64,000 bases of DNA from Phaeosaccion multiseriatum (GCA_965112735.1 OZ218964.1:992001-1056000), one strand, 5' to 3'. Numbered from the stretch's first letter, positions 35,192 to 54,703 are shown. The notes: generated by a model from the letters alone, not told the origin. Program-made: numbers and translations.

Positions 35192-36353
35192 TCAAGCCAG
35201 CGCAAAGACCACATTGTCCACTGAGAAGTCTCCTGCTTCGTCTCCGCCTTGCACGCCCACCTTGACCGCAATGGTGACGTCAGTCACCACCCCCGTTACA
35301 CTGCATGTAACCGTCACGCCCTCGGTGGCAGCGCAGTCCCCGAGGCCAAAGATGAGCCAGTCGGCGTCGACCTGCTGGAAGTAGAGCTCCACATTTCTTG
35401 TGCCAGGGGAGATACCCGTCACGTCGGCCGAAAGCGTGTAGCTTTGCCCGGCGGTAGGGAGCGTCAACACTTGGAACAACTGCACATGCCAGTTCGCCGT
35501 CCCCGCCGCGTCCATGCTGATGAGGGCTCCTCCGCCGGCGGCGGTGATGGTTGCCGTCGGCACGTTAGTGGAGCTGACGTAGCCGGTCCAATCGCTCAAG
35601 CTGGCGGCAAAGTCGCCGTTAACGAGCAGATTCTCGCCGGAAGTGGCGGGCGGCGAGGTGGCCGCTGTAGTAGGGACGGGAGTGGGGGCCGGATTGGGAC
35701 CACCACCTCCGTCCACACGGCGCAGGGAAGCGTCTTCCACGGCAAAGTCCACCGCCTCCTGGCCCGCAAAGATACCGAACTTGACGGGCTGCTCGACCGA
35801 CCCCACCACCGCTGTCAAGCTGCATTGGGTCACCGTGGCTGTGACGCTGCATGGCACGGAGCCAAAGAGAATCCAGGGGGCCGCGCTTTGCTGCAAGAAG
35901 AGCTGAACCTCACGGGGCCCCGCGCCGGCAAGAGACACCACATCCAGCAGCAGAGTGTACTCCTCGCCAGCGGCTGCCAAGGGGAACACTTGGAACAGCT
36001 GAACATGCCAGTCAGTGCCAGCCTCACCAATCACAAACTCTGCTCGGCCGCCCGTGCCCACGATGCTGCTCGTAGCTGGGCTGTCAAGATATGTCTCCCA
36101 ACCCGCCAGTCCGTCGGCGAAGGTTGGGTTGACCAGCAGCTCGTCCCCTCCGCCAGGGGTGACGGGGGCCGGGGTGGGAGAGACTGGAGGAAGGGAGGGA
36201 ACAGGGGTACCAGCGACGGGGGGACCGGTGGGCACTGCCGTGGGTGGTGCAGTGGGTGTTGCAGTGGGTGTTGCAATGGGTGGGACGGTGCCACCGACGG
36301 GGGCGGGTGTGATGGGCCCTCCGCACTGTGGGGTGGGAGGAGAGAGCCCACGT

Positions 36354-36395
<42 letters not shown>

Positions 36396-38639
36396 GAGTT
36401 CGGTGTGTACGGGGAAAGGGGGAGAAGCAAGAGTATGTATGTAGCGATCGATACATGGGAGAGACTTGTTGATTTTTCACGGGCAGCAAAGAAAAAGAGA
36501 CCGGCCCCTCCCTCCCTCCCCCACGCCTTGAATATGACTGCCAGTCTACAAGTACAGTAAGACTCACCGCAGAGGAATCGTCCCCCGTTGGTAGGCAGGG
36601 CTCGTCATCGCAGCAAGTCAGGCCACTGAAGAAGTTGGGCCCACCGCACGTTCCCCCCGAGATGATGCATCCCGCCGGCTGAAGCGTTGCTCCTTCGGTA
36701 TCGCAGGCACTGAGAAGCCTCGCACCGCCCCAGTTCACGCGGTCGTAGACGGGGCTATCGAGGCCGTCGCAAACGAGTCTGAGCTCCGTTGTGGATTGCC
36801 CAATGGGCACCTCGACCTCCCACACCCTGTTTGGGGAGCTGAAGTCGCCAGTAGCGCCCAGGATGGGAGACTCGTAGTTACCGTTACAAAGCCCATTCAC
36901 GCACACCTCGCACTGCACCGAAGCGGCCTGTCCCGCGTACGAGTCGTCTACGCCGACGGTGGCGATGAACGAGCCTCCTCTGTAGTCTGCGACGTTAAGG
37001 TCGAGGTCCAGCGGGGCCTGGGTGCCGAGGCCCTTGGTGTAGAGCTGGCCTGCAATGCTAATCTCGTCGCCGTCTCCGGTCGCCACCCCTCCATTGGACT
37101 GGTCAAACTCAATCGGCCCCTGTCCATTCTCGGAACGGACAATCAGCTCCGGTCGGTCCGAAACAAAGTTTTCAAACTCCGGTGTGCAGATGGGCGCGTC
37201 GCCGGGGCACACCACGTCGCTGAAGTCGTAAGAAGGGTCATCCAACGGACCCTGACCGGCGCCGACCACATTGGTCACCACAATCACACCCTCGTCGGAG
37301 TGCTCCAGCACGTGGCAGTGGGCCACCACAGGGCCGGTGTAACGGTCGAATTCCATAACGGTGACGGCCACTCCGACGGCTGCAACGTTGTCGATCCAGT
37401 CACCCGGTTGGTGCCAGTTGGGCACCTTGATGGAGTCGGTGGTCATGGCCTGCACCTGGAAGTGGTTCTGTGTGGGAGGCAGGAGACAGCATGAGACAAG
37501 AGGCAAAAGAGAGAAGAGAAGAAAGAGAGTGAGAAAAAGCGGAGGTCGAGAGGAGAGTGGTGGATAGCTGCGGGCCACCCAGGCCTAAGCGAAGGCACAC
37601 GGAGGAAGGCAAGGCACAGTATTTGACTTGTGTAGTCCGTCACACCACTGAGTACGTATGCTTACTTACCACGTGCATGTGGAAGGGGTGGGCCTCCGTT
37701 CCGCCAACGCTGTGGTGGCGAGAGGAGAAGAAGGGCAGGGAGGGAGGCAGAAGGAGAGAAAAGAGAGAAAGCGCGGCGAGGAGGCGATTTAAGTCAAACG
37801 AAACAGGCCACTAGAATAATACGCACACACACACACACACACACACTCCAAGCACGCAACTATGCATGCACACGCACACGCACACGCAAAACAAAACGAT
37901 ACTCTCCTCACCTGATGGTGTATCTGCGGCCGCGCACGAAAGTGGCTCCGGCGAGGTAAGTGTTAAAGTCGCTAAACAGCTCTCCGTTAATGTCGGCACG
38001 GACATCAAAGTCAAAGAAGTTTGTGGCGGGCTGGGTGTAAACGTCCTGTAGATAGCGAGAGCGGCAGGGCATCCACTCCGGCAGGGGCGCACCCAGCGCT
38101 CCGGGCCCGTCGACACTCAGATCCATAATGGGTATCCTTTGACCGGACCCAAGTTCGCCCGGCTCCAACAGGATGCGGTAGGTACCCCTCCTGCAGGAGA
38201 TGGCGATATCCACGCGGCTGGACATGGTGAAGAAGAGGTGTGTCTCTCCCTCCTCGTCGGGCTCCAGAACGCGAGGAAGCTGTGCGTTGCGTAGGCGTGG
38301 TGTGGGGGGTAGTGTGGTCGGTAGATAGGTAGGTAGGTAGGTAGGAAGGAGGGAGTGGTGGGATACGTGAAGAGGGGATTGGGGCGGGGAAGGACAAGGC
38401 GGGGGATAAGTGGGTGGGTGGGGAAGTGTGGCACAAACAAGAGGCGTGGGAGGCAAGCGAGAAAGAGGAAAAGAGTGGCACCCGACACCCTGTACTTGAC
38501 CCGCCTTTTTTCCTTACATCGCTGAGGTAGATTCCGTCCTTGGCCAGCAACTCGACATTGCATCTCGAAGAGCTCGGGATTGAGATGTGAGCACTCTCCT
38601 CGTGGCCAATGAAGAGGAAGCGCAGCCTGAGTTCAGGGA

Positions 38640-38681
<42 letters not shown>

Positions 38682-40491
38682 CAGGCAATAGGGTGGGACG
38701 GAGGGGTGAGCAAATAGAATGAGACAGGAGAGAAAGGCAGAGAACGAAAGGGGGAGAGAAAGACGAGACGGAGAGAGAGCACCGGTTGGTCTCTCTGCCT
38801 ACCCTCCGGCGCATCGCTGGTACCCTCCCTCCCACCAACTTACGCACCTCTTGCGCTCGTTGACGCCGAGCGTCTCGGAGATAGGGGCCGCGCCCGTGGT
38901 GGTCTTAACAAGGTTTCCGTTGACCATGTAGAACGTGTCCAGCGTGTTGGAGTACCACAAGTCGTCGCTAGAGAGGGTGGCCACCCGATTTGTGCTGTGG
39001 GTGGACGGATGGCAGTGGATGGATGGGTGGTGGAGGGATGTAAGTTGTAAGGGCATGACGAAGAGGTGTCTGGCGGAGCCCAAAAACAAGGGGAGTTATA
39101 TGGGAAGGAAACACAAGTTGCCTCTGAGCCTGCCCATCCACAGCCATCCTGCTTCCTCCTTGACCTCACGTACGCACGCACACACACACGCACCCACACA
39201 CACACGCACCCACGCACACACGCAACGCATACACACACGCAACACACGCAAACACACCTTTCCGGGATGAACTCCTGCATAACGATCATCTCATCATTTG
39301 CGTCAAGGTCCAAGTATTCCGTCGGCTTACTCTGACCCTCCACCAAAGGATTGTCCTCGATGATGAGCGCACCGGCAGCTCCGGCACCAGTCTGGAGGGC
39401 CACCGAGCCGTGGTGATGTGTGTGGTACCAGAAGGTGCCGCCCGAGTGGTCGCACGGAATGCGGTAAATGTATTCGAAGCTCTCACCAGGGTCAATGCGG
39501 ATAGACGGATCGTCAGCAGGGGAGACGCCGCTGATGTGGATGCCGTGGGTGTGTAAGTTGATGGTCAAAGGGTCGTGGAAGGTGTTGAGAGGGCCGGTCG
39601 GGTTGGTGCCCTGTAGGATGAGATAGAGAGGGGTGGGTGGGAGAGAGAGCGAGAGCGAGAGAGTAACTTGAGTATGGAGGTACACACAAGCGGTGGCTCT
39701 AAAAAACAATCCGCCGAGACATGCTACACTAACGGGCCCCCCTGCGCTATGCCCTTCTCAACCCCCCTCTCTTCCCCCTCCCTCCCAACTCACTCACTCA
39801 CTCACTCACTCACCGACAAGTTGTTGACAAGCGTGAGTCTGTACGTCTGGCATGCCTCCATGCGGATGGTGGGCCCTGGGATGAGTCCATCAAAGGCGCG
39901 GGTGGTGATGAGCGTGTCTGTGGCATCGTCGTAGAAGCTCACTTCCTCCATCGTCATGGTCGCAGAGTATTCTCCGCCAAACTGGCCCCCGGCGCTGAAG
40001 GTCCATCCGACGTCCCCGGAGTTGGGGGGCTGTGATTTCATGTGAGGGAGGTGAGGCAGAGGTGTGAGGTGAGCCCCGCTGTCGCCCGTGTGTCGTGTCG
40101 GTTCTCCTTACGTAATCTCCTCAAGTGACCAAGTTCTACCTAAGTCAATTTAGTACGTACCGGCTGTGCGCTCATGTCGATGGCGTCCTTGCACTTTTGG
40201 CAAACGGTGTCGGCTCCGCAGTCGGTGGCGGCGGTGATGCCCACACAGCTCGATACCTCGAAGGCAGTAGGGGTCGCGGTGGGCGGGGCCGTCGATGGAG
40301 CCGCAGTGCCGTCTCCTTCGCGCAGGCGGTAAATCCTTGTGGGCCTCTGCAGCAGCAGTTGGTGATACATGCACGTGTACGGGAGAGAGAGAGAGGAGTG
40401 ATGGCGGGGGGTTGAAAAACTGTAGAGTACGAAAGGAGATGGAATGAATGTACTCACTTTGTACGGGGCTCAAGACACGAGAAGCACGAGG

Positions 40492-40564
<73 letters not shown>

Positions 40565-43500
40565 ACGTACCACTTCGCTGACGATGAGCTCCCCGGAGGT
40601 GGGCTCCACTTGCATATCGACAGCCCTCAGCTCGGCCATGAAGCGGGCCCTGCAAGGAGAGAGAGAGAGAGAGAAGGGAGGGTCAGGAGAGGATGAACAT
40701 GTACGATGCCGCCTGGCTAGTCAGGGATAGTGCCGCTGCTCTGTGATAGCTTGTCGGCACTCACTGGGAATAGTCGGGTTCCCCGTTGCCCAGACTGTCG
40801 AAGTAGAACATGCAGCCCTGGAGGATGGCAGCGGATGGAGGAGGAGGAGGAGGAGGAGGAGGAGGAGGAGGGAGCGAGAGGATGAGGCCCCGTCTTTACA
40901 GACCATGGGTCCTACACACGTACACGCACACACACACACACGCAAGCGCCACAGTACCTTAGTGTAGTCACCGAAAAGCAGCTTGTCGCCGTACTTGCTC
41001 GGCAGTGCCCCGCCCGACTCATGCCACAGCACAGAGGTGATGGACGCGCCGTTGCCTCCGCAGCGAAGGGGGTAGTCGGGGTCAACGGCTCCGATACGGT
41101 ACTGGAACTTGGGCTGAACAAAGCCTCCGCCGTACACGGGGTCGCAGAGGGTGTATTCCTGTGTTGTTGTTGTTGTTGTAGCAGTCGGGCAGTTGAGAGG
41201 AAGGATGCGGTGGGAAGAATAAAAACAAAAAATACACAAAAATGTAATACGTTCCCAACCCCCTTCCTCCCTTATCCTCCTCCCTTTCTTAAGGTGATAG
41301 AAATAAGTCAATAAATACACGAGAATTGCCCCCCTTCCTTTTCTAACCCTGGTTTTTGCCTCACTCACGTTGTCCTCCAAGTAAGCCTGCCTAGTGGCGC
41401 TGATGATGGCGTTGGAGAGCCCCATGGACCCACCCTCCAGGCAAGGCCAGCCAAAGTTGGGCGTTGTCCCGGTGGCCAGCGGGTTGGGCAGGTGGTTCAC
41501 CTCTTCTGCCCAGTCAGAGGCCACGTCTGAGTTGGCATGATACAAGGACGACAAACGTGTGAGGCATGGGGGATGGGGGGGATTGACTGGTCAGGGGGGC
41601 ACAAGAGGAGGGAGACGCGGGGGTGAAAACCGTTAACCTATACTTGAACCGCTGAACCGTTAACCTATACTTGACAACCGTTAACCTCTACTTGTATGGG
41701 CTCACCTCCGAAGTAGATGCTGCCGTCGGGGGCGCTCACTGCTCGGAAAGGATTTCGCACACCCTTTCCTATGATCTGCATCGCCGCCGGACAAGCACAA
41801 AAGAGAAGATCAAAAGTGGATCATCGTAAGGGCGCGCCTCTTCCTTCCACCAAAGAACAACTTGAGCCTTCCACCAAAGAACAACTGAGCTTTCCACCAA
41901 AGAACACACCTCGAAGTCAGCCCCGGATCCAAGCTCCCCAATGGTACCGAGCACAGCGTCTCCTCGATAGTTTGCGGGCGTAATGCGGAACATTTTCCCC
42001 AAGAGAATCTCGTCCTGCTGCGCTCGGAAGGCCCCCTGGGGGTTGGGGTAGGTTGAACCCGGCAGCTCATTGGGGCACTCGTCGTTGGGTGACTGACCGG
42101 CGTCGTTGGAGTCGTAATCCGCGCCGTCTCCAACTGTGAGCATGAAGCTGCCGTCGGAGAGGGGGACAATGCTGCCCGGGGCGTGCGTGGTGGACATGGA
42201 GCATAGGGTGCCATCGCCGATGAGGGTCTGGTCCCAGCCGCTGATGCGGGGAAGAGGGGGAGGGAGAGAAGGGGAGGCGGGGGGGGGGGTGAGAAGGTAA
42301 CTCGGACACACAAACACACGGACAGAGAACAGCGCACACACGCGCCCACGCCCTCGCTGATGCTTACGTTGAGGTGATTCTGTTGGTGGCGGCATCGTAA
42401 TCCAGGTTTATTCTCCTGAACTGTCCGTAGTGCTTGCACTTGCGCCCCGAGTCCGTGTACTGCCATCCATCACAGGGAGAGCCAAGAGGGAGGGAGGTGC
42501 AAGCAACACGTAAGTCAGCAAGCAGTGGCAGGTGGACGCAAAGAAGCGGTGCCGTCAGCACAGGTCTGTGCAAGACTGGATGCTGCAGCATTTCCCCCGA
42601 CTCATTTACAAATGAATGGGGCCCACTCACCAGACCGATGGCCCCTCCCGGGCATCCCCCCTGGTTCCAGAACTGTTGTTCGTCGGGGGTGGCCAAACTA
42701 TAGCAGCAGCAGCAGCAGCAGCAGCAGCAGTGGAGGAAGAGGGGGGGGGGGCGCTGTCAGTCAAGCAATTCCCCCAATCAAGAACACAAGAAATGATAGC
42801 GACAGGGAGGGCACTTACTCCCACCACGGAGGCGTGCCCGTGATTTTGCCCGAGTAGAAGATGTAGCCATACGGCTGCGCAGGCCAGTCAGGGTCGAAGG
42901 CGAAGGACTGCACGCCCCGATCGTAGAGCTGATACACCTCCGCGCTGAACTCAAACAGGGCTCTGCCCTGGTCGAACCGGTCGTCGATACTGTGTTTTGT
43001 GTGTGTGTATGTGTGTGTGTGTGTGTGACAAGAGTCAGGCATATGATGGATAAATGGAAAGCGAGATGGGATGGTTGGAGACTCGCTGCCTTTGAACGCC
43101 CCTGCTGCGGTGAGTTTAAAACCAGCCAGCCGTGACCCTCCTCCCATTTTTTCTCTCCCTCAAGGCCACTCCGGCAGCAGCAACAGCAGCAGCAGAAGCA
43201 GCACCACCACCAGCAGCAGCAGCAGCAGCCAGGGGGGTCCTCCATGTCTCTGGAGAGTCGCAGCAGCTGCCCTGGTGTACTCGCTTCAATCCCAACTGGG
43301 CTGTTCGTTGGCGTGTGACTGCTCTCGAAACGCCAACCACATCCTCAACGCTGACCCAACACCTACCTATCCATCACCGCGAGGACACCGTTGTGCATGA
43401 CAGCAATCACGTGCCGCCCCGAGTAGCCGGGGGCACCAACAGGGGCGAATTTCAACTGAGCAGGGTGATGGGGAAATTCGGTGAGCAGCAGGGGCAAGGA

Positions 43501-44094
43501 GTATACCGTGCGTGAGTCAGAGAAACAAGTATCAGTAGCAGCAGAGGGTGGTGAAGCGGCGGTGGCAAAGTCATGCACGCGTATCCTGAGACGCTCGCTC
43601 CTAGGCTTGAAGATCCAAGCGTGAAGATCCAAGCGAACAAGGCCCAGAGAGAGAACAAGCACGGTATGACCACTACTGCAAGTGGCGTTAGGAAGCATTG
43701 CCCAAAGGGATGGGACCACAGGCAGGTGCAGCGGACGTCCTCCTCTACCCTCCCATCCCCCGCATATCATCCCCTGAAGGAAGGTCCGCCGCAGGGAAGT
43801 CTCAGTTCCCCCACAGACATCGGTTGCTGTTGTGCAGGGCCCCGTCTTCCGCCCCCCCCCCCCCCCCGCCCCCCGTCAGCCCACACACACCTGAACAATA
43901 TCGTTGCTAGGGTAATTCCACCACACGTCGCTGAAAGTTCGGTCATCCAGATCCCACACCAGCTCAGCCTCCAGCTCGGGCGTAGTGGGGTCCGTGACCA
44001 CTTCGACACCAGTGGCATCCTGGGCCAGGAAAGGTGTCAACAAAAGACATCGCCCAAGCACGGCGAGGAGCGAGTAGAAAAACGCCCCCTTCAT
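35192..44094 (-). CDS. Secreted multidomain oxidoreductase: signal peptide - PQQ-type glucose/sorbosone dehydrogenase (GSDH) beta-propeller - three-domain multicopper oxidase - NPCBM/NEW2 - CBM1-like - 2x CBM4_9 (~1655 aa, 20 exons)
   Basis: Exons 44094-43891, 43455-43367, 42989-42819, 42697-42631, 42459-42368, 42240-41910, 41775-41706, 41526-41369, 41158-40958, 40817-40765, 40649-40571, 40346-40161, 40029-39814, 39610-39258, 38994-38848, 38626-38518, 38279-37912, 37709-37670, 37467-36568, 36325-35192. All 19 introns are GT-AG with matching phases; 4968 nt in total. GSDH motifs: RGVQSFAFDPDW...YIFYS, THAPGSI...TVGDGA, GKMFRI, GVRNPFR, GDVASDWAEEVN, NFGWPCLEG. MCO copper motifs: NLHTHG, WYHTHHHG, HPFHMHV, HCHVLEH. 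Confidence 0.88.
35195..36142 (-). other. Tandem pair of CBM4_9-like modules separated by a Pro/Thr linker
   Basis: LLVNPTFADGLAGW...WHVQLFQ...GEEYTL and NLLVNGDFAASLSDW...WHVQLFQ...GQSYTLS...DFSVDNV. The two copies are clearly homologous. Confidence 0.8.
36712..37167 (-). other. NPCBM/NEW2 (CBM51-like) carbohydrate-binding module
   Basis: FVSD...NGQGPIEFDQSNG...GDG..ISIAGQLYTKGLGTQA...FIATVGVDD...ELRLV...DRVNWGGARL follows the NPCBM consensus. Confidence 0.85.
37270..40000 (-). other. Three-domain multicopper oxidase (exons 13-19)
   Basis: All ten His ligands and the T1 Cys are present (HTH, HTH, HPFHMH, HCHxxxH); also FDGLIPGPTIRM and LLAKDGIYL. Confidence 0.93.
41628..41694. repeat. 3x 19-bp intronic repeat AACCGTTAACCT(A/C)TACTTG
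   Basis: Copies at 41628, 41655 and 41676. Confidence 0.85.
41844..41906. repeat. ~3x 23-24-bp intronic minisatellite (TTCCACCAAAGAACAAC...)
   Basis: Tandem copies next to the donor site at 41909. Confidence 0.85.
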
Positions 44095-46428: not shown

Positions 46429-50382
<3,954 letters not shown>

Positions 50383-51447: not shown

Positions 51448-52420
51448 ATGTTGATCATTCTGGTGGCTGGGGGTCTGTATCTCTACATCATGATTGGCGT
51501 CATGCCAGTGCTACGATCTGGGGTGCTTCCTTTGCCAAGGCCGGAGCCAGAGGCCTCAGTCCTGGCGATCGCCTGGTTATGGGTCAAGTTTGTCGCCTAT
51601 GCAGGTAAGTAAGAAGGAAGAAGGAAGGGAAGTGGGACGACGCATTTGGTGCGAAGGAATCGATTCAAGGGAGCAAGCACGACACGGAGAGCACCTTGCT
51701 CTGCAGATTAACGACCTTCCCCCCCCCCCTTCCCCCCAACTCGCACAAGTCTCCCTACTAGACACGAGAAGCCTTCTTATCCCATACCGCACCCATCCCA
51801 CGTCTCCGTATGCACTACTTTCCCCCATACCTTCCACTGCTTGTTAGTCTTGGCGGCCCCATGGGTGTCAGTGGGGAAGCTTGAAGTCGTGCCGGAGTTC
51901 CCGCGGCATGAGGTGTCCAACGACAAGCTCAGAGGCCTATCCAGAAAGCTGTCTGTGGTGTACTCACCGCCCCACATGAGGTGTGCTCTTGACCATCATC
52001 ATCGTGATGGTGGTAAGGGTGCTGGACGGCACCACCGCCATCATGTCCGCGGGCACCAACAGCATCCCGGCTTGTACCAGCAGCGGCAGGGGCTTGGCCT
52101 GGGTCCGGAGGCGAACGCGAAAGGGAAGGAGAAGGACGACGGGGAGGAGGACAAGGAGGAGGAGGGAGAGATGCGACAGGGGCGGTCCTCTTCATCAATG
52201 TCACCCAAGAGAGAGCGAGGAGGGGCGAATCCATTCTCTGTGGCCCTGCCCCCCTCCCTGTGCCGGCCGGTCAGGATGGTGCGGGTGGAGAGTGCGCCGG
52301 CGGGATTGGGAGGCATCGAGGATGAGCTGAAGAGGGGCCTCATGGGAGTGCTCTCCTCGGATGATGATGTTGACGACGATGACGAGGAGGGCGAGGAGGG
52401 CGAGGGTTTCCATTATGATG

Positions 52421-52466
<46 letters not shown>

Positions 52467-54703
52467 GAAGGAAGACGCTGAGGAAGAGGACCACCTTGTC
52501 GGTGCTGTTATCGGAGGAGATGGCAGATTTGCGTCGCCAGAAGAGCTTGTGGTAAGTCCCCACCAAGGAGAAGGAGGAGACCCAGAGGGTGTCTCAGCAG
52601 CAGTACCGACAGTGGTGAGGAGGGTTGTAAGAGGAGCGGCGATGGGGGCAGATGGGAGCCTGGGAGGTGTCACAGAGACAGACAGCCCCGCCTACTTTAT
52701 CCGGACCTCCAGCACCTCCAGCACCAACAGCACGGCAAGCACTGCGAGTACGGCGAGTATTGCGAGCACCAGCAGCAGCGTGAGCAGCGGGAGCACCGGC
52801 GGCAAACACCGGCCCCACCCCTCCACTAAGAGCAGTGCCATCCATGATGAGTGCAAGAGGTTGGCCAAAAAGTGCTCTGTAGAGGCGTCTGGCTTCAGCA
52901 GCAGCAGCAGCGGTGGCTGTCTCACCCCGATATCTGCCTGCAGCAGCGCCAGCAGCAGCTCCAGTCACACCCCCAGCGCCTCTCCTCACGCCGCAGCCAC
53001 AGCAGCAGGGCTCCGTCGTGGTGGTGGTGGTGGTGATGGTGGTGGTGGTGGTGGTGATGGTGGTGGTGGTGGTGGTGGTGGTGGTGGTGGTGGTGGTGGT
53101 GGTGGTGGTGGTGGTGGTGCAAGCAGGGGCGGCGGCGGTGGGCCAAGGCGGAAGCGGCGTGGAAGGTCGCGGGTGCTCAGGGATAGAGGGGCAATGAGTC
53201 TCGGGGCCGGTCAGGGGAAGCTCCTGCGGCGGTCGCTACTGGGATCCCTTCCGGGACCGCCCTCTCGGAGGAAGCTTACGGTGGTGCTGGATCTGGACGA
53301 GTGTCTGGTTCATACCAAGTTCAACATCCGGGGGGTGACGGATAAGGTTCACAGCTACCGGCAGATTGAGGGCCGGCCCGACGACGTGCAGCAAGTCAAC
53401 AGCTTTGAGATTGACATTGAAGACGGCAGTACCGGCACGGTCAACACACGCCCAGGCCTCATGCACTTCCTCGCAGAGGTGAGCGCTGACTACCACGTCG
53501 TCGCCTTTACTGCGGGCACAGAGGCGTATGCCAGCAAGGTCCTGGACCAGATCGATCCAAAGCATGAGCTCTTCCATGCCCGATTGTACCGGGACTCATG
53601 TGTCGAAGCCAAGCCGGGCATCTTTTTGAAGGATCTCGTCAATGCGATTCGAACCCTTGAAGGCGGGTGCAACCTATGCAAGGCACAGGACCAGCGCGCC
53701 CTTCAAAGCCGCGAGCGTGCTCAGGGGCTGGTGACCTTCCTCCCCGGTACCCGCTCGTCCTCGTCGCTGTCCTTCATCAAGAACCACGCTCCCGCTGCAG
53801 CTGAACAACCATCGCCTGACCTTGCTGCCGCGCTGGCGGGGGCGAGGGCCGAGATTGGTGAAGAGGTAAGACTAGGATAGCAGACCACGCCACAGGGCAG
53901 GGAGGGTGGAGGGCCAGGGGAAGTAGGAAGCTGCCCACCCATCTAATCTAACGCGCTCTTTCATATCTCCGAGGAAGGAGAGATGCTGGCCGTTCTACGC
54001 AAGTCGTTGACTTGCCTCTTACCATCATCCTCCTCCTCTTCTTCTGTCTTGCCCTTCTCTGTCCCTTCTCCTCAGGCCTGTTCTGCACACAGTACGCACG
54101 CTCATTCTCTCTCACCGAACCGGGACAATCAGCCCGACCACACCAACAACAACACCAACGCCCGAGGGTGGGACGAGATGGACAGCATTCTGGCGCGAAC
54201 AGTGTTGGTGGACAACAGCCCACTCTCCTTTGTCATGCAGCCCAACAACGGAGTGCTGGTGAGCAACTGGTACGACGATGCCTCGGACGAAGCACTGGAC
54301 CCTGTGCTGCGAATCATTCGCCGTGTGGATGAGCTCGAAGACGTGCGCCCCGCGCTCAAGGCCCTGTTCGGTCTCGAAGAGATTCTCAAAGACTTTTCCA
54401 AGTATGTGGAGAAAGGCGTGGAGCAGCATCGCCTCAAGAGCGGGGCCTCAGGGGGGGGGGGAGCAGGGGCGGGGGCAGCGTGGGCCGCGCCCGCACCTGC
54501 TCTTGTTGCAGAGTCTCTACAGCAGCCCGTTCTTGGTGTGGTGGCGTCTGCTGCTGCTACTACTACAGACGCCGTCACCGGTAGTAGCATGGTGAAGGCA
54601 CAGTCTTTGGACAGCGCAGCACCAGCATCACCACCTGCAGCAGCACAAGCGACTGCTGAGGGCGCTCTCTCCGCAGCCGCTATGGAAGACGAGCGAAGCA
54701 GCG

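Follow-up and report, generated by a model that had tools for sequence, protein, structure and literature searches.

The window analysed here (the whole stretch of 64,000 nucleotides from Phaeosaccion multiseriatum) very probably holds, on its minus strand, a single gene that joins a dehydrogenase and an oxidase in one chain. The architecture put forward in the original prediction, one secreted chain made up of a GSDH-type dehydrogenase, a complete multicopper oxidase and carbohydrate-binding modules (CBMs), is supported by the gene model, by Pfam and profile matches and by homologues. As an overall explanation we tentatively suggest that this would be an anchored, secreted fusion in which electrons may pass within the molecule from sugar to a quinone, on to the T1 copper and finally to O2.

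Exon chaining, for which codon log-odds, splice scores and tblastn hits of homologues were the inputs, was carried out independently of the original prediction and gave the same number of exons and the same length, a single frame running from an ATG at 44094 to a TGA at 35192 (CDS 4968 nt). All 19 introns are of the GT..AG type (115-435 nt in length, median 202 nt) and residues ~36-1160 are covered by single BLASTP alignments to fusion homologues (best E 1.7e-148). The very short exon that had been predicted to encode HPFHMH was recovered, and the motif is kept in all fusion homologues.

35192..44094, minus strand: complete CDS of 20 exons with 1655 codons and a terminal TGA (from the exon chaining, backed by homology)
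37670..37709, minus strand: exon 18, 40 nt, encoding HPFHMH with a ligand each for T1, T2 and T3 copper (exon table)

The chain is one of an old and conserved ochrophyte algal family, whose members have a GSDH-type propeller followed by a flexible Cys-containing linker and a complete three-domain oxidase. Dehydrogenase and oxidase are collinear in uninterrupted ORFs on four contigs. P0012 is an uninterrupted ORF of 5253 nt on a metagenome contig, where its neighbours are of eukaryote type; P0019 occupies a single ORF of a 4189-nt contig that has UTR-like ends, and P0050 a single ORF in GCA_024449935.1. Four fusion ORFs (1236-1259 aa, three of the four labelled complete) are present in the transcript assemblies of Vaucheria litorea (MMETSP0945), and fusion proteins are also found in Tribonema minus and Chrysoparadoxa australica. 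The window sequence and all the algal fusions form one clade both in the oxidase tree (SH-aLRT 99) and in the dehydrogenase tree (SH-aLRT 96), and the two trees have the same internal grouping with the window sequence first to branch, a congruence that points to one ancient fusion retained ever since. In a separate metagenomic ORF, P0054, a GSDH domain (a strong Pfam hit, 111 bits) is combined with PKD and with an oxidase that is placed outside the algal clade, hinting at a second, independent fusion. In public records the algal fusion proteins are labelled just 'multicopper oxidase' because the propeller falls below the Pfam cut-off in most of the members scanned. The architecture had been thought undescribed, which fits our literature search, where no paper on a GSDH plus multicopper oxidase architecture was found, although the proteins are present in public databases for several algae.

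No family was matched when single N-terminal exons were scanned with Pfam. The spliced protein scored 187.5 bits (E 1.9e-54, Z=100000) against a profile built solely from bacterial proteins that pass Pfam GSDH (PF07995), and the PQQ glucose dehydrogenase 1c9u was matched by the family profile over the whole domain (positions 23-461, E 2.7e-30). The six-bladed beta-propeller fold is supported on a model of the propeller of P0019, a homologue ~32% identical to the window protein (pLDDT 83, pTM 0.86), the top Foldseek matches of which are 5min, 1c9u, 3a9g, 7cdy and 2g8s. Compared with sGDH the domain, at ~480 residues, has large insertions and many conserved cysteines; a short hydrophobic stretch is present at the N-terminus of the homologues as well.

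44023..44094, minus strand: probable signal peptide, residues 1-24 (translation read by eye; cleavage guessed after FLA)
40317..43977, minus strand: GSDH-type six-bladed propeller, residues ~40-515, exons 1-12 (profile and fold matches)
42183..42185, minus strand: His227, equivalent of the sGDH catalytic base His144 (alignment)
41752..41757, minus strand: Arg325-Asn326, the pair that corresponds to Arg228-Asn229 flanking the PQQ carbonyls in sGDH (GxRNP aligned to GHRNP of 1c9u)

The role of His144 as the catalytic base of sGDH has been described (PMC6881810, PMC6881789), and the position aligned to it, that of His227, is invariant in 23 of the 23 sequences of alignment A2. The sGDH of Acinetobacter calcoaceticus (1c9u) and the Asd/YliI-type aldose dehydrogenases (2g8s, 3a9g, 3das) share their fold (Foldseek E about 1e-16) and sequence family with the algal propeller, which differs from sGDH in being eukaryotic and fused to an oxidase and also at the PQQ-carboxylate sites. 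In this weakly aligned blade the position of sGDH Arg408 is occupied by Val and a Lys adjoins the position of Lys377, while at the position of Arg406 (again in a weak alignment) the window protein has Arg487 and its relatives have Gly, Asn, Thr or Val. Neither Arg406 nor Arg408 is conserved in the algal family or in bacterial GSDH-PKD relatives, and because these C-terminal PQQ-carboxylate arginines are not kept the use of PQQ is no more than possible. The bacterial proteins in question (secreted GSDH-PKD-lectin/CBM proteins named 'PQQ-dependent sugar dehydrogenase' and uncharacterised) stand closest to the propeller outside the algae and, like the algal fusions, are secreted and multidomain, have carbohydrate-binding modules and are without the RxR motif; they differ in forming a clade separate from the algal sequences (SH-aLRT 100), in having PKD after the propeller and, with the single exception of P0054, in having no oxidase.

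The unconserved arginines would also suit a propeller that is a non-enzymatic binding module of the GSDH fold, like hedgehog-interacting protein (HHIP), in which case the whole protein would be a wall-anchored laccase-like or metal oxidase. We consider this unlikely. It would account for the Pfam GSDH scores of the algal homologues (19.8-32.6 bits, cut-off 25), among which only P0019 is above threshold in the algal members scanned, for the presence of HHIP among the sequence and fold matches and for the replacement of the Arg-Asn pair by RQ or HQ in some relatives (Asn229 to Gln in some members; His-Gln in P0050), and it would agree with the synthesis of PQQ by prokaryotes only (PMC6881810). 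However, algal and bacterial members alike keep the catalytic His without exception and nearly always the Arg of the RN pair, genuine PQQ dehydrogenases are matched better than HHIP in both sequence and fold, and a different set of PQQ-binding residues is also found in AA12 enzymes (PMC6881789).

An AA12 domain is part of the pyranose dehydrogenase of Coprinopsis cinerea (AA8 cytochrome b - AA12 PQQ domain - CBM1), which like the window protein is secreted and eukaryotic and has a six-bladed PQQ-type propeller tethered by a linker to an electron-accepting domain, together with a carbohydrate-binding module; enzymes of this type keep the catalytic His (PMC6881789). The algal propeller is nearer to bacterial sGDH and Asd than to AA12 (the AA12 structures 6jt5 and 6i1t are among the propeller fold matches, ranked below sGDH, Asd and HHIP), and its acceptor is a four-copper oxidase that would be able to end the chain at O2, whereas the haem b of the Coprinopsis enzyme passes electrons to another protein. 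Neither a cytochrome nor a CBM_1 family was found in Pfam scans of the exons.

40161..40316, minus strand: Pro/Thr- and Cys-rich linker, residues 516-567, exon 12 (translation)
37207..40029, minus strand: three-domain multicopper oxidase, residues 568-1065, exons 13-19 (Pfam and copper motifs)

Almost every member of the fusion family has a Cys immediately in front of the oxidase. Within the oxidase, Cu-oxidase_3 was recognised at 44.1 bits (Pfam cut-off 21) and Cu-oxidase_2, a domain split by introns over exons 17-19, reached 19.6 bits on exon 19 alone (cut-off 20.4); Pfam Cu-oxidase scores of the homologues are 28.6-49.7 bits. The oxidase had been called complete, and all of the copper ligands (10 His and 1 Cys) were indeed found in the motifs H659xH661, H702xH704, H972xxH975xH977 and H1028-C1029-H1030 with H1034, and are conserved across the fusion family. 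From this ligand set alone we infer that the oxidase would reduce O2 to water. An oxidase model of a homologue matches CueO, Campylobacter McoC, Thermus laccase and bilirubin oxidase (TM by target 0.68-0.80), which share its three-cupredoxin fold and carry every copper ligand but have Met at the T1 axial position, where the window protein has Val1039 and most family members Ile, Val or Leu. Unlike these enzymes, the algal oxidases form a clade of their own in which a propeller always lies in front.

36709..37149, minus strand: NPCBM/NEW2, residues ~1085-1231 (Pfam PF08305, 68.8-69.8 bits, cut-off 23.9)
36314..36708, minus strand: Cys-rich knot, residues 1232-1282, spanning intron 19 (CBM1 resemblance by eye)
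36146-36313, minus strand: Pro/Thr linker before the first CBM_4_9
35690..36145, minus strand: first CBM_4_9, residues ~1339-1490 (Pfam PF02018, 28.3 bits, cut-off 25.9)
35195..35638, minus strand: second CBM_4_9, residues ~1508-1655 (Pfam PF02018, 31.8 bits, cut-off 25.9)

Four CBMs had been predicted in the C-terminal part. The NPCBM and both CBM_4_9 modules are above the Pfam cut-off, and the latter two are 45% identical to each other (E 5.7e-34), but the 'CBM1-like' module corresponds to the Cys-rich knot, for which no Pfam family was matched even at E<=10, so that three CBMs rather than four are recognised. The NPCBM and the two CBM_4_9 modules probably hold the protein on a wall or mucilage polysaccharide.

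In the mechanism that we propose the propeller would bind a quinone cofactor, by default guess PQQ acquired from bacteria, and use it to oxidise an aldose or a reducing end, the T1 copper of the attached oxidase would re-oxidise this cofactor in one-electron steps when the mobile domains dock, and the trinuclear copper centre would convert O2 to water, giving a net, peroxide-free reaction of 2 aldose + O2 -> 2 aldonolactone + 2 H2O. The docking is modelled on that of the cytochrome domain in cellobiose dehydrogenase and in the fungal PQQ pyranose dehydrogenase. Cellobiose dehydrogenase consists of a flavin dehydrogenase and a cytochrome b joined by a flexible, disordered linker, often with a CBM, and interdomain transfer takes place by docking. 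It has been discussed as a model of interdomain electron transfer (PMC6881789), although it is unlike the algal fusion in using FAD and haem, in being non-homologous and in that its electrons exit to another enzyme. Both domains of the algal protein are rather probably catalytic; direct electron transfer from propeller to T1 copper is somewhat less likely than not. The two-domain AlphaFold2 model has a pTM of 0.59, as against the value given above for the propeller alone, so no fixed interdomain interface is predicted; the corresponding linker in the homologue model is disordered (pLDDT <50), which would be consistent with mobile docking.

The low pTM and disordered linker, with an interdomain interface that is not confidently predicted, are also compatible with both domains being active but coupled only by diffusible substrates, with no direct passage of electrons, an arrangement that we judge quite unlikely. 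At the wall the oxidase would then generate quinones, phenoxy radicals or oxidised metal ions, the dehydrogenase would reduce them back using sugars, and the pair would in this way control how far phenolics are cross-linked or the redox state of metals (an option already raised in the original prediction). Laccases acting on phenolics have a non-coordinating T1 axial residue, as do most members of the algal family, sGDH-type enzymes can pass electrons in vitro to artificial acceptors resembling quinones (to our knowledge their natural acceptor is not known) and the CBMs would place both activities on one polymer. Yet a covalent fusion kept since one ancient event, as the congruent trees suggest, is more than co-localisation requires, and no candidate mediator is at hand; sequence alone hardly separates such coupling from direct transfer.

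40030..40160, minus strand: intron 12, dehydrogenase/oxidase junction (CCG|GTACGT ... TCACAG|CCC, 131 nt, phase 0)

The junction between the two halves at intron 12 rests on comparison with homologues because no RNA runs were found for the organism; all four runs in which the locus is present are of DNA, and their contigs continue through the introns. Retention of this intron would bring in a stop after six codons and a frameshift. At the equivalent point (P-[FY]-N-x-P-E-x-W) the homologues read straight through in uninterrupted ORFs, homology to the fusion relatives begins exactly at the acceptor (PPNSGDVGW versus PFNMPEVTW and PYNQPELEW) and the alignment is collinear across the junction. 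Two adjacent genes, a dehydrogenase ending at the stop at 40140 and an oxidase starting from the ATG at 40041, with a coincidental in-frame GT..AG pair, would fit a gene model without RNA support from the organism itself and the presence of that ATG 12 nt upstream of the proposed acceptor, but such a split is very unlikely because the chain is collinear in the uninterrupted ORFs and complete transcripts of homologues, whose similarity starts precisely at the acceptor, and because an oxidase beginning MKSQPPNSG would lack its own signal peptide and yet bear extracellular-type CBMs; the donor GTACGT and the pyrimidine-rich CAG acceptor are, moreover, like those of the remaining introns of the gene.

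Returning to the proposed intramolecular chain, it is conceivable, if rather unlikely, that scavenged PQQ serves to oxidise the reducing sugars of the anchoring polysaccharide, with electrons going directly to the protein's own T1 copper as in a 'sugar/oxygen fuel cell' in which O2 would undergo a four-electron, peroxide-free reduction to water. If this were true, a terminal oxidase built into a dehydrogenase would be a first, as would a PQQ enzyme in a photosynthetic eukaryote, and PQQ would be a bacterial vitamin for these algae.

The gene encodes one secreted chain in which a dehydrogenase-type propeller, a complete multicopper oxidase and polysaccharide-binding modules are joined, and this arrangement has been kept since one fusion event. 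It lies on the minus strand of intron-rich, GC-rich (~58%) eukaryotic DNA and was modelled independently of the original prediction by chaining exons between GT/AG sites in a dynamic-programming scheme scored by codon log-odds, followed by refinement with tblastn matches of homologues and by enumerating the splice combinations that the 5′ end allows (one exon end, at 40958, was placed from the TKGC motif of the homologues). The final model runs from ATG 44094 to TGA 35192 and comprises 20 exons (4968 nt, 1655 residues), so that independent exon chaining gave the same exon number and length as had been proposed originally, and the predicted 40-nt exon carrying HPFHMH was located at 37709–37670. 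All 19 introns are GT..AG (115–435 nt, median 202), and GC3 of the coding sequence is 0.75 compared with an intron GC of ~0.55. The dehydrogenase and oxidase halves meet at the following intron:

40160–40030, minus strand: intron 12 (the junction), 131 nt, phase 0; exon 12 ends ...CAGCCG at 40161 and GTACGT follows

Exon 13 opens with CCCCCC at 40029, preceded by a pyrimidine-rich tract ending TCACAG, and retention of the intron would bring a stop six codons later and a frame shift. An RNA-restricted run search with an exon-rich stretch of the gene listed no libraries, and a search with the whole gene returned four runs, all from one sample. Their contigs over 37500–43400 are unspliced (for example 39822–40484 and 40955–42693) and break only at microsatellites; because they pass straight through introns the runs are DNA and uninformative on splicing. 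The GT/CA and CT microsatellites at which they break lie in introns of the gene (37813–37913, 38312–38362, 38634–38688 and others). Word depth rises several-fold at 38879–39075, 39273–39469 and 40258–40454, suggesting that short sequences at these places recur elsewhere in the genome. Other ORFs in the window are:

46824–48182, plus strand: 452-aa ORF with well over 100 near-consecutive glutamine codons (CAG-type repeat)
48966–50027, plus strand: 353-aa ORF, mostly tandem LPTY units (12-nt repeat), which may be a non-coding microsatellite and not a protein
51841–53880, plus strand: 679-aa ORF with acidic, Gly-rich and Gln-rich tracts and the motif LDLDECLVHT, its product appearing by eye to resemble FCP1/NIF-type phosphatases

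The translation opens with a putative signal peptide, as judged by eye. Pfam recognizes Cu-oxidase_3 (44.1 bits), NPCBM (~69 bits) and two CBM_4_9 domains, both over the cut-off, while Cu-oxidase_2, a domain split by introns, falls slightly under the cut-off on one exon. All four copper motifs are found in the spliced protein (H659/H661, H702/H704, H972/H975/H977 and H1028-C1029-H1030...H1034), in agreement with the claim of a complete oxidase with all copper ligands, and the T1 axial position is Val1039. Pfam scans of raw ORF pieces and of the exact exons of the N-terminal part gave no GSDH match, and a full-library search with the best N-terminal exon matched only 33 proteins; 15 long matches were scanned and Pfam GSDH was found in all except the fusion P0012. 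The spliced protein nevertheless scores 187.5 bits against a profile built from bacterial Pfam-GSDH proteins only, and a family profile matches the PQQ glucose dehydrogenase 1c9u over its entire length (E 2.7e-30), which bears out the assignment of the N-terminal half to a GSDH propeller. The Cys-rich knot gave zero Pfam signal and its reading as a CBM1-like module was dropped; this detail of the original interpretation fell, and the architecture itself proved real and conserved, as seen from homologues and trees.

AlphaFold2 models were made of residues 1–1090 of the homologue P0019 (mean pLDDT 87, pTM only 0.59, residues 537–554 disordered) and of the propeller alone (pTM 0.86). In these models both domains are confidently folded with no prediction of their mutual orientation, the pTM of 0.59 suggesting that the relative orientation modelled is unreliable, as would be expected of two domains joined by a flexible linker. 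Foldseek matched the oxidase half to McoC, CueO, Thermus laccase and bilirubin oxidase, and the propeller first to PQQ-dependent soluble glucose dehydrogenase (sGDH) and Asd enzymes and then to HHIP and fungal AA12. The PQQ site was read against published residue roles (PMC6881810, PMC6881789), using sGDH numbering. Every aligned sequence has a histidine at the position of the catalytic base His144 (His227 in the window protein), and Arg228/Asn229 correspond to Arg325-Asn326, this pair being Arg-Gln in xanthophyte members and His-Gln in the homologue P0050. In the blade that would bind the PQQ carboxylates, where the alignment is weak, Val stands in place of Arg408, Arg406 is matched by Arg in the window protein only, and a lysine adjoins the Lys377 position. 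Judged from these residues the propeller keeps the catalytic core of a dehydrogenase, and a non-catalytic propeller is a serious rival reading. Bacterial GSDH-PKD relatives show the same gap at the PQQ-carboxylate arginines as the algal fusions, and AA12 enzymes hold PQQ with another residue set than sGDH, so the propeller may still bind PQQ; to our knowledge none of these bacterial relatives has been characterized. An electron relay from sugar to the oxidase is an attractive hypothesis: the reduced quinone would be re-oxidized by the T1 copper, either directly through docking of the domains or through small phenolic mediators, and the oxidase would reduce O2 to water. The electron step would be downhill, since T1 copper potentials are far higher than that of the PQQ/PQQH2 couple.

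Cu-oxidase domains were also present on three of the 33 proteins matched by the N-terminal exon, and later searches enlarged the set to the following members:

Vaucheria litorea: four ORFs of 1236–1259 aa in transcript assemblies (MMETSP0945), three of the four labelled complete
Tribonema minus: several fusion proteins from database search
Chrysoparadoxa australica: two fusion proteins from database search
Further members: metagenomic and genome entries from database search
P0012: ORF of 5253 nt, with CRAL/TRIO and COQ9 as contig neighbours
P0019: single ORF on a 4189-nt contig, with UTR-like flanks
P0050: one ORF of 5517 nt (GCA_024449935.1)
P0054: metagenomic uninterrupted ORF of 1147 aa (L003:748-4191)

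The fusion family is conserved across several ochrophyte classes and, from the transcript assemblies, is expressed in Vaucheria. The last four members listed are uninterrupted ORFs, so splice prediction plays no part in them. The window protein aligns with uninterrupted members in single BLASTP alignments over residues ~36–1160 (E down to 1.7e-148), and at the junction homology restarts exactly at the acceptor (PPNSGDVGW against PFNMPEVTW and PYNQPELEW). Two neighbouring genes, one ending at the stop at 40140 and an oxidase gene starting at ATG 40041, are therefore very improbable, as these collinear ORFs, alignments and acceptor-exact similarity speak for the single chain originally proposed and an oxidase begun at that ATG would lack a signal peptide. 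Protein collections yielded neither the window's own protein nor a close orthologue (top identity ~33%), and among AlphaFold DB clusters only two Tribonema entries cover part of the propeller plus the oxidase. P0050 has two multicopper-oxidase units in tandem after its propeller (residues ~640–1160 and ~1160–1680). Of the propeller, the NCBI entries P0051 and P0052 (818–836 aa) have only the last blade, at the N-terminus; the oxidase follows, and the hydrophobic C-terminus may be a membrane or GPI anchor. Either these gene models are truncated or the two proteins derive from the fusion as anchored, oxidase-only forms.

Trees of the two halves were quick-search trees without bootstraps, sequences being dropped only for failing stated coverage filters. 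In the oxidase tree the window protein groups with all algal fusions in a single clade (SH-aLRT 99) set among stand-alone oxidases of algae and bacteria, and the propeller tree recovers the clade again (SH-aLRT 96). There its neighbours are two further sequences and a GSDH-PKD protein of Chrysoparadoxa; fusions and neighbours together are split from bacterial GSDH-PKD proteins (SH-aLRT 100). Both trees share the same sub-groups (P0012 with P0014, the P0050 group and the xanthophyte group) and place the window protein as first branch, which fits a single ancient fusion whose halves would have co-evolved since. The Chrysoparadoxa australica protein P0053, a GSDH-PKD protein without oxidase, lies beside the fusions in the propeller tree and may show what the gene looked like before the fusion. 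In P0054 a strong Pfam GSDH match (111 bits) is combined with PKD, Cu-oxidase_3 and Cu-oxidase_2 domains and a tail at the C-terminus; the oxidase of P0054 sits on a long branch outside the algal fusion clade, and the protein may be a second, independent dehydrogenase-oxidase fusion.

In line with what the original prediction had supposed, no published account of a natural fusion between a GSDH/PQQ dehydrogenase and a multicopper oxidase was found in a full-text literature search, and a brown-alga genome preprint refers to a PQQ-type sugar dehydrogenase but to no oxidase fusion. Sequences of the family are already public, the Tribonema proteins being named ‘Multicopper oxidase’ or ‘CBM6 domain-containing protein’, but are unrecognized; in all scanned algal members except P0019 the propeller is under the Pfam cut-off, which makes the architecture invisible in domain databases. 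The window protein adds a member that is divergent and differs in its set of CBMs. Cellobiose dehydrogenase and fungal PQQ pyranose dehydrogenase are examples of extracellular dehydrogenases that contain their own electron-transfer domain, a group central to fungal polysaccharide attack and much used in biosensors. These pass electrons to another enzyme, whereas with a four-copper oxidase coupled to the dehydrogenase the chain would end at O2 inside one protein, peroxide-free. Such a dehydrogenase-to-oxidase arrangement has been built artificially in enzymatic fuel cells, and no natural counterpart was found in the literature search. The family offers a testable case for the natural electron acceptor of sGDH-type quinoproteins, for a possible dependence of algae on bacteria for PQQ, and for oxidative chemistry at algal cell walls.
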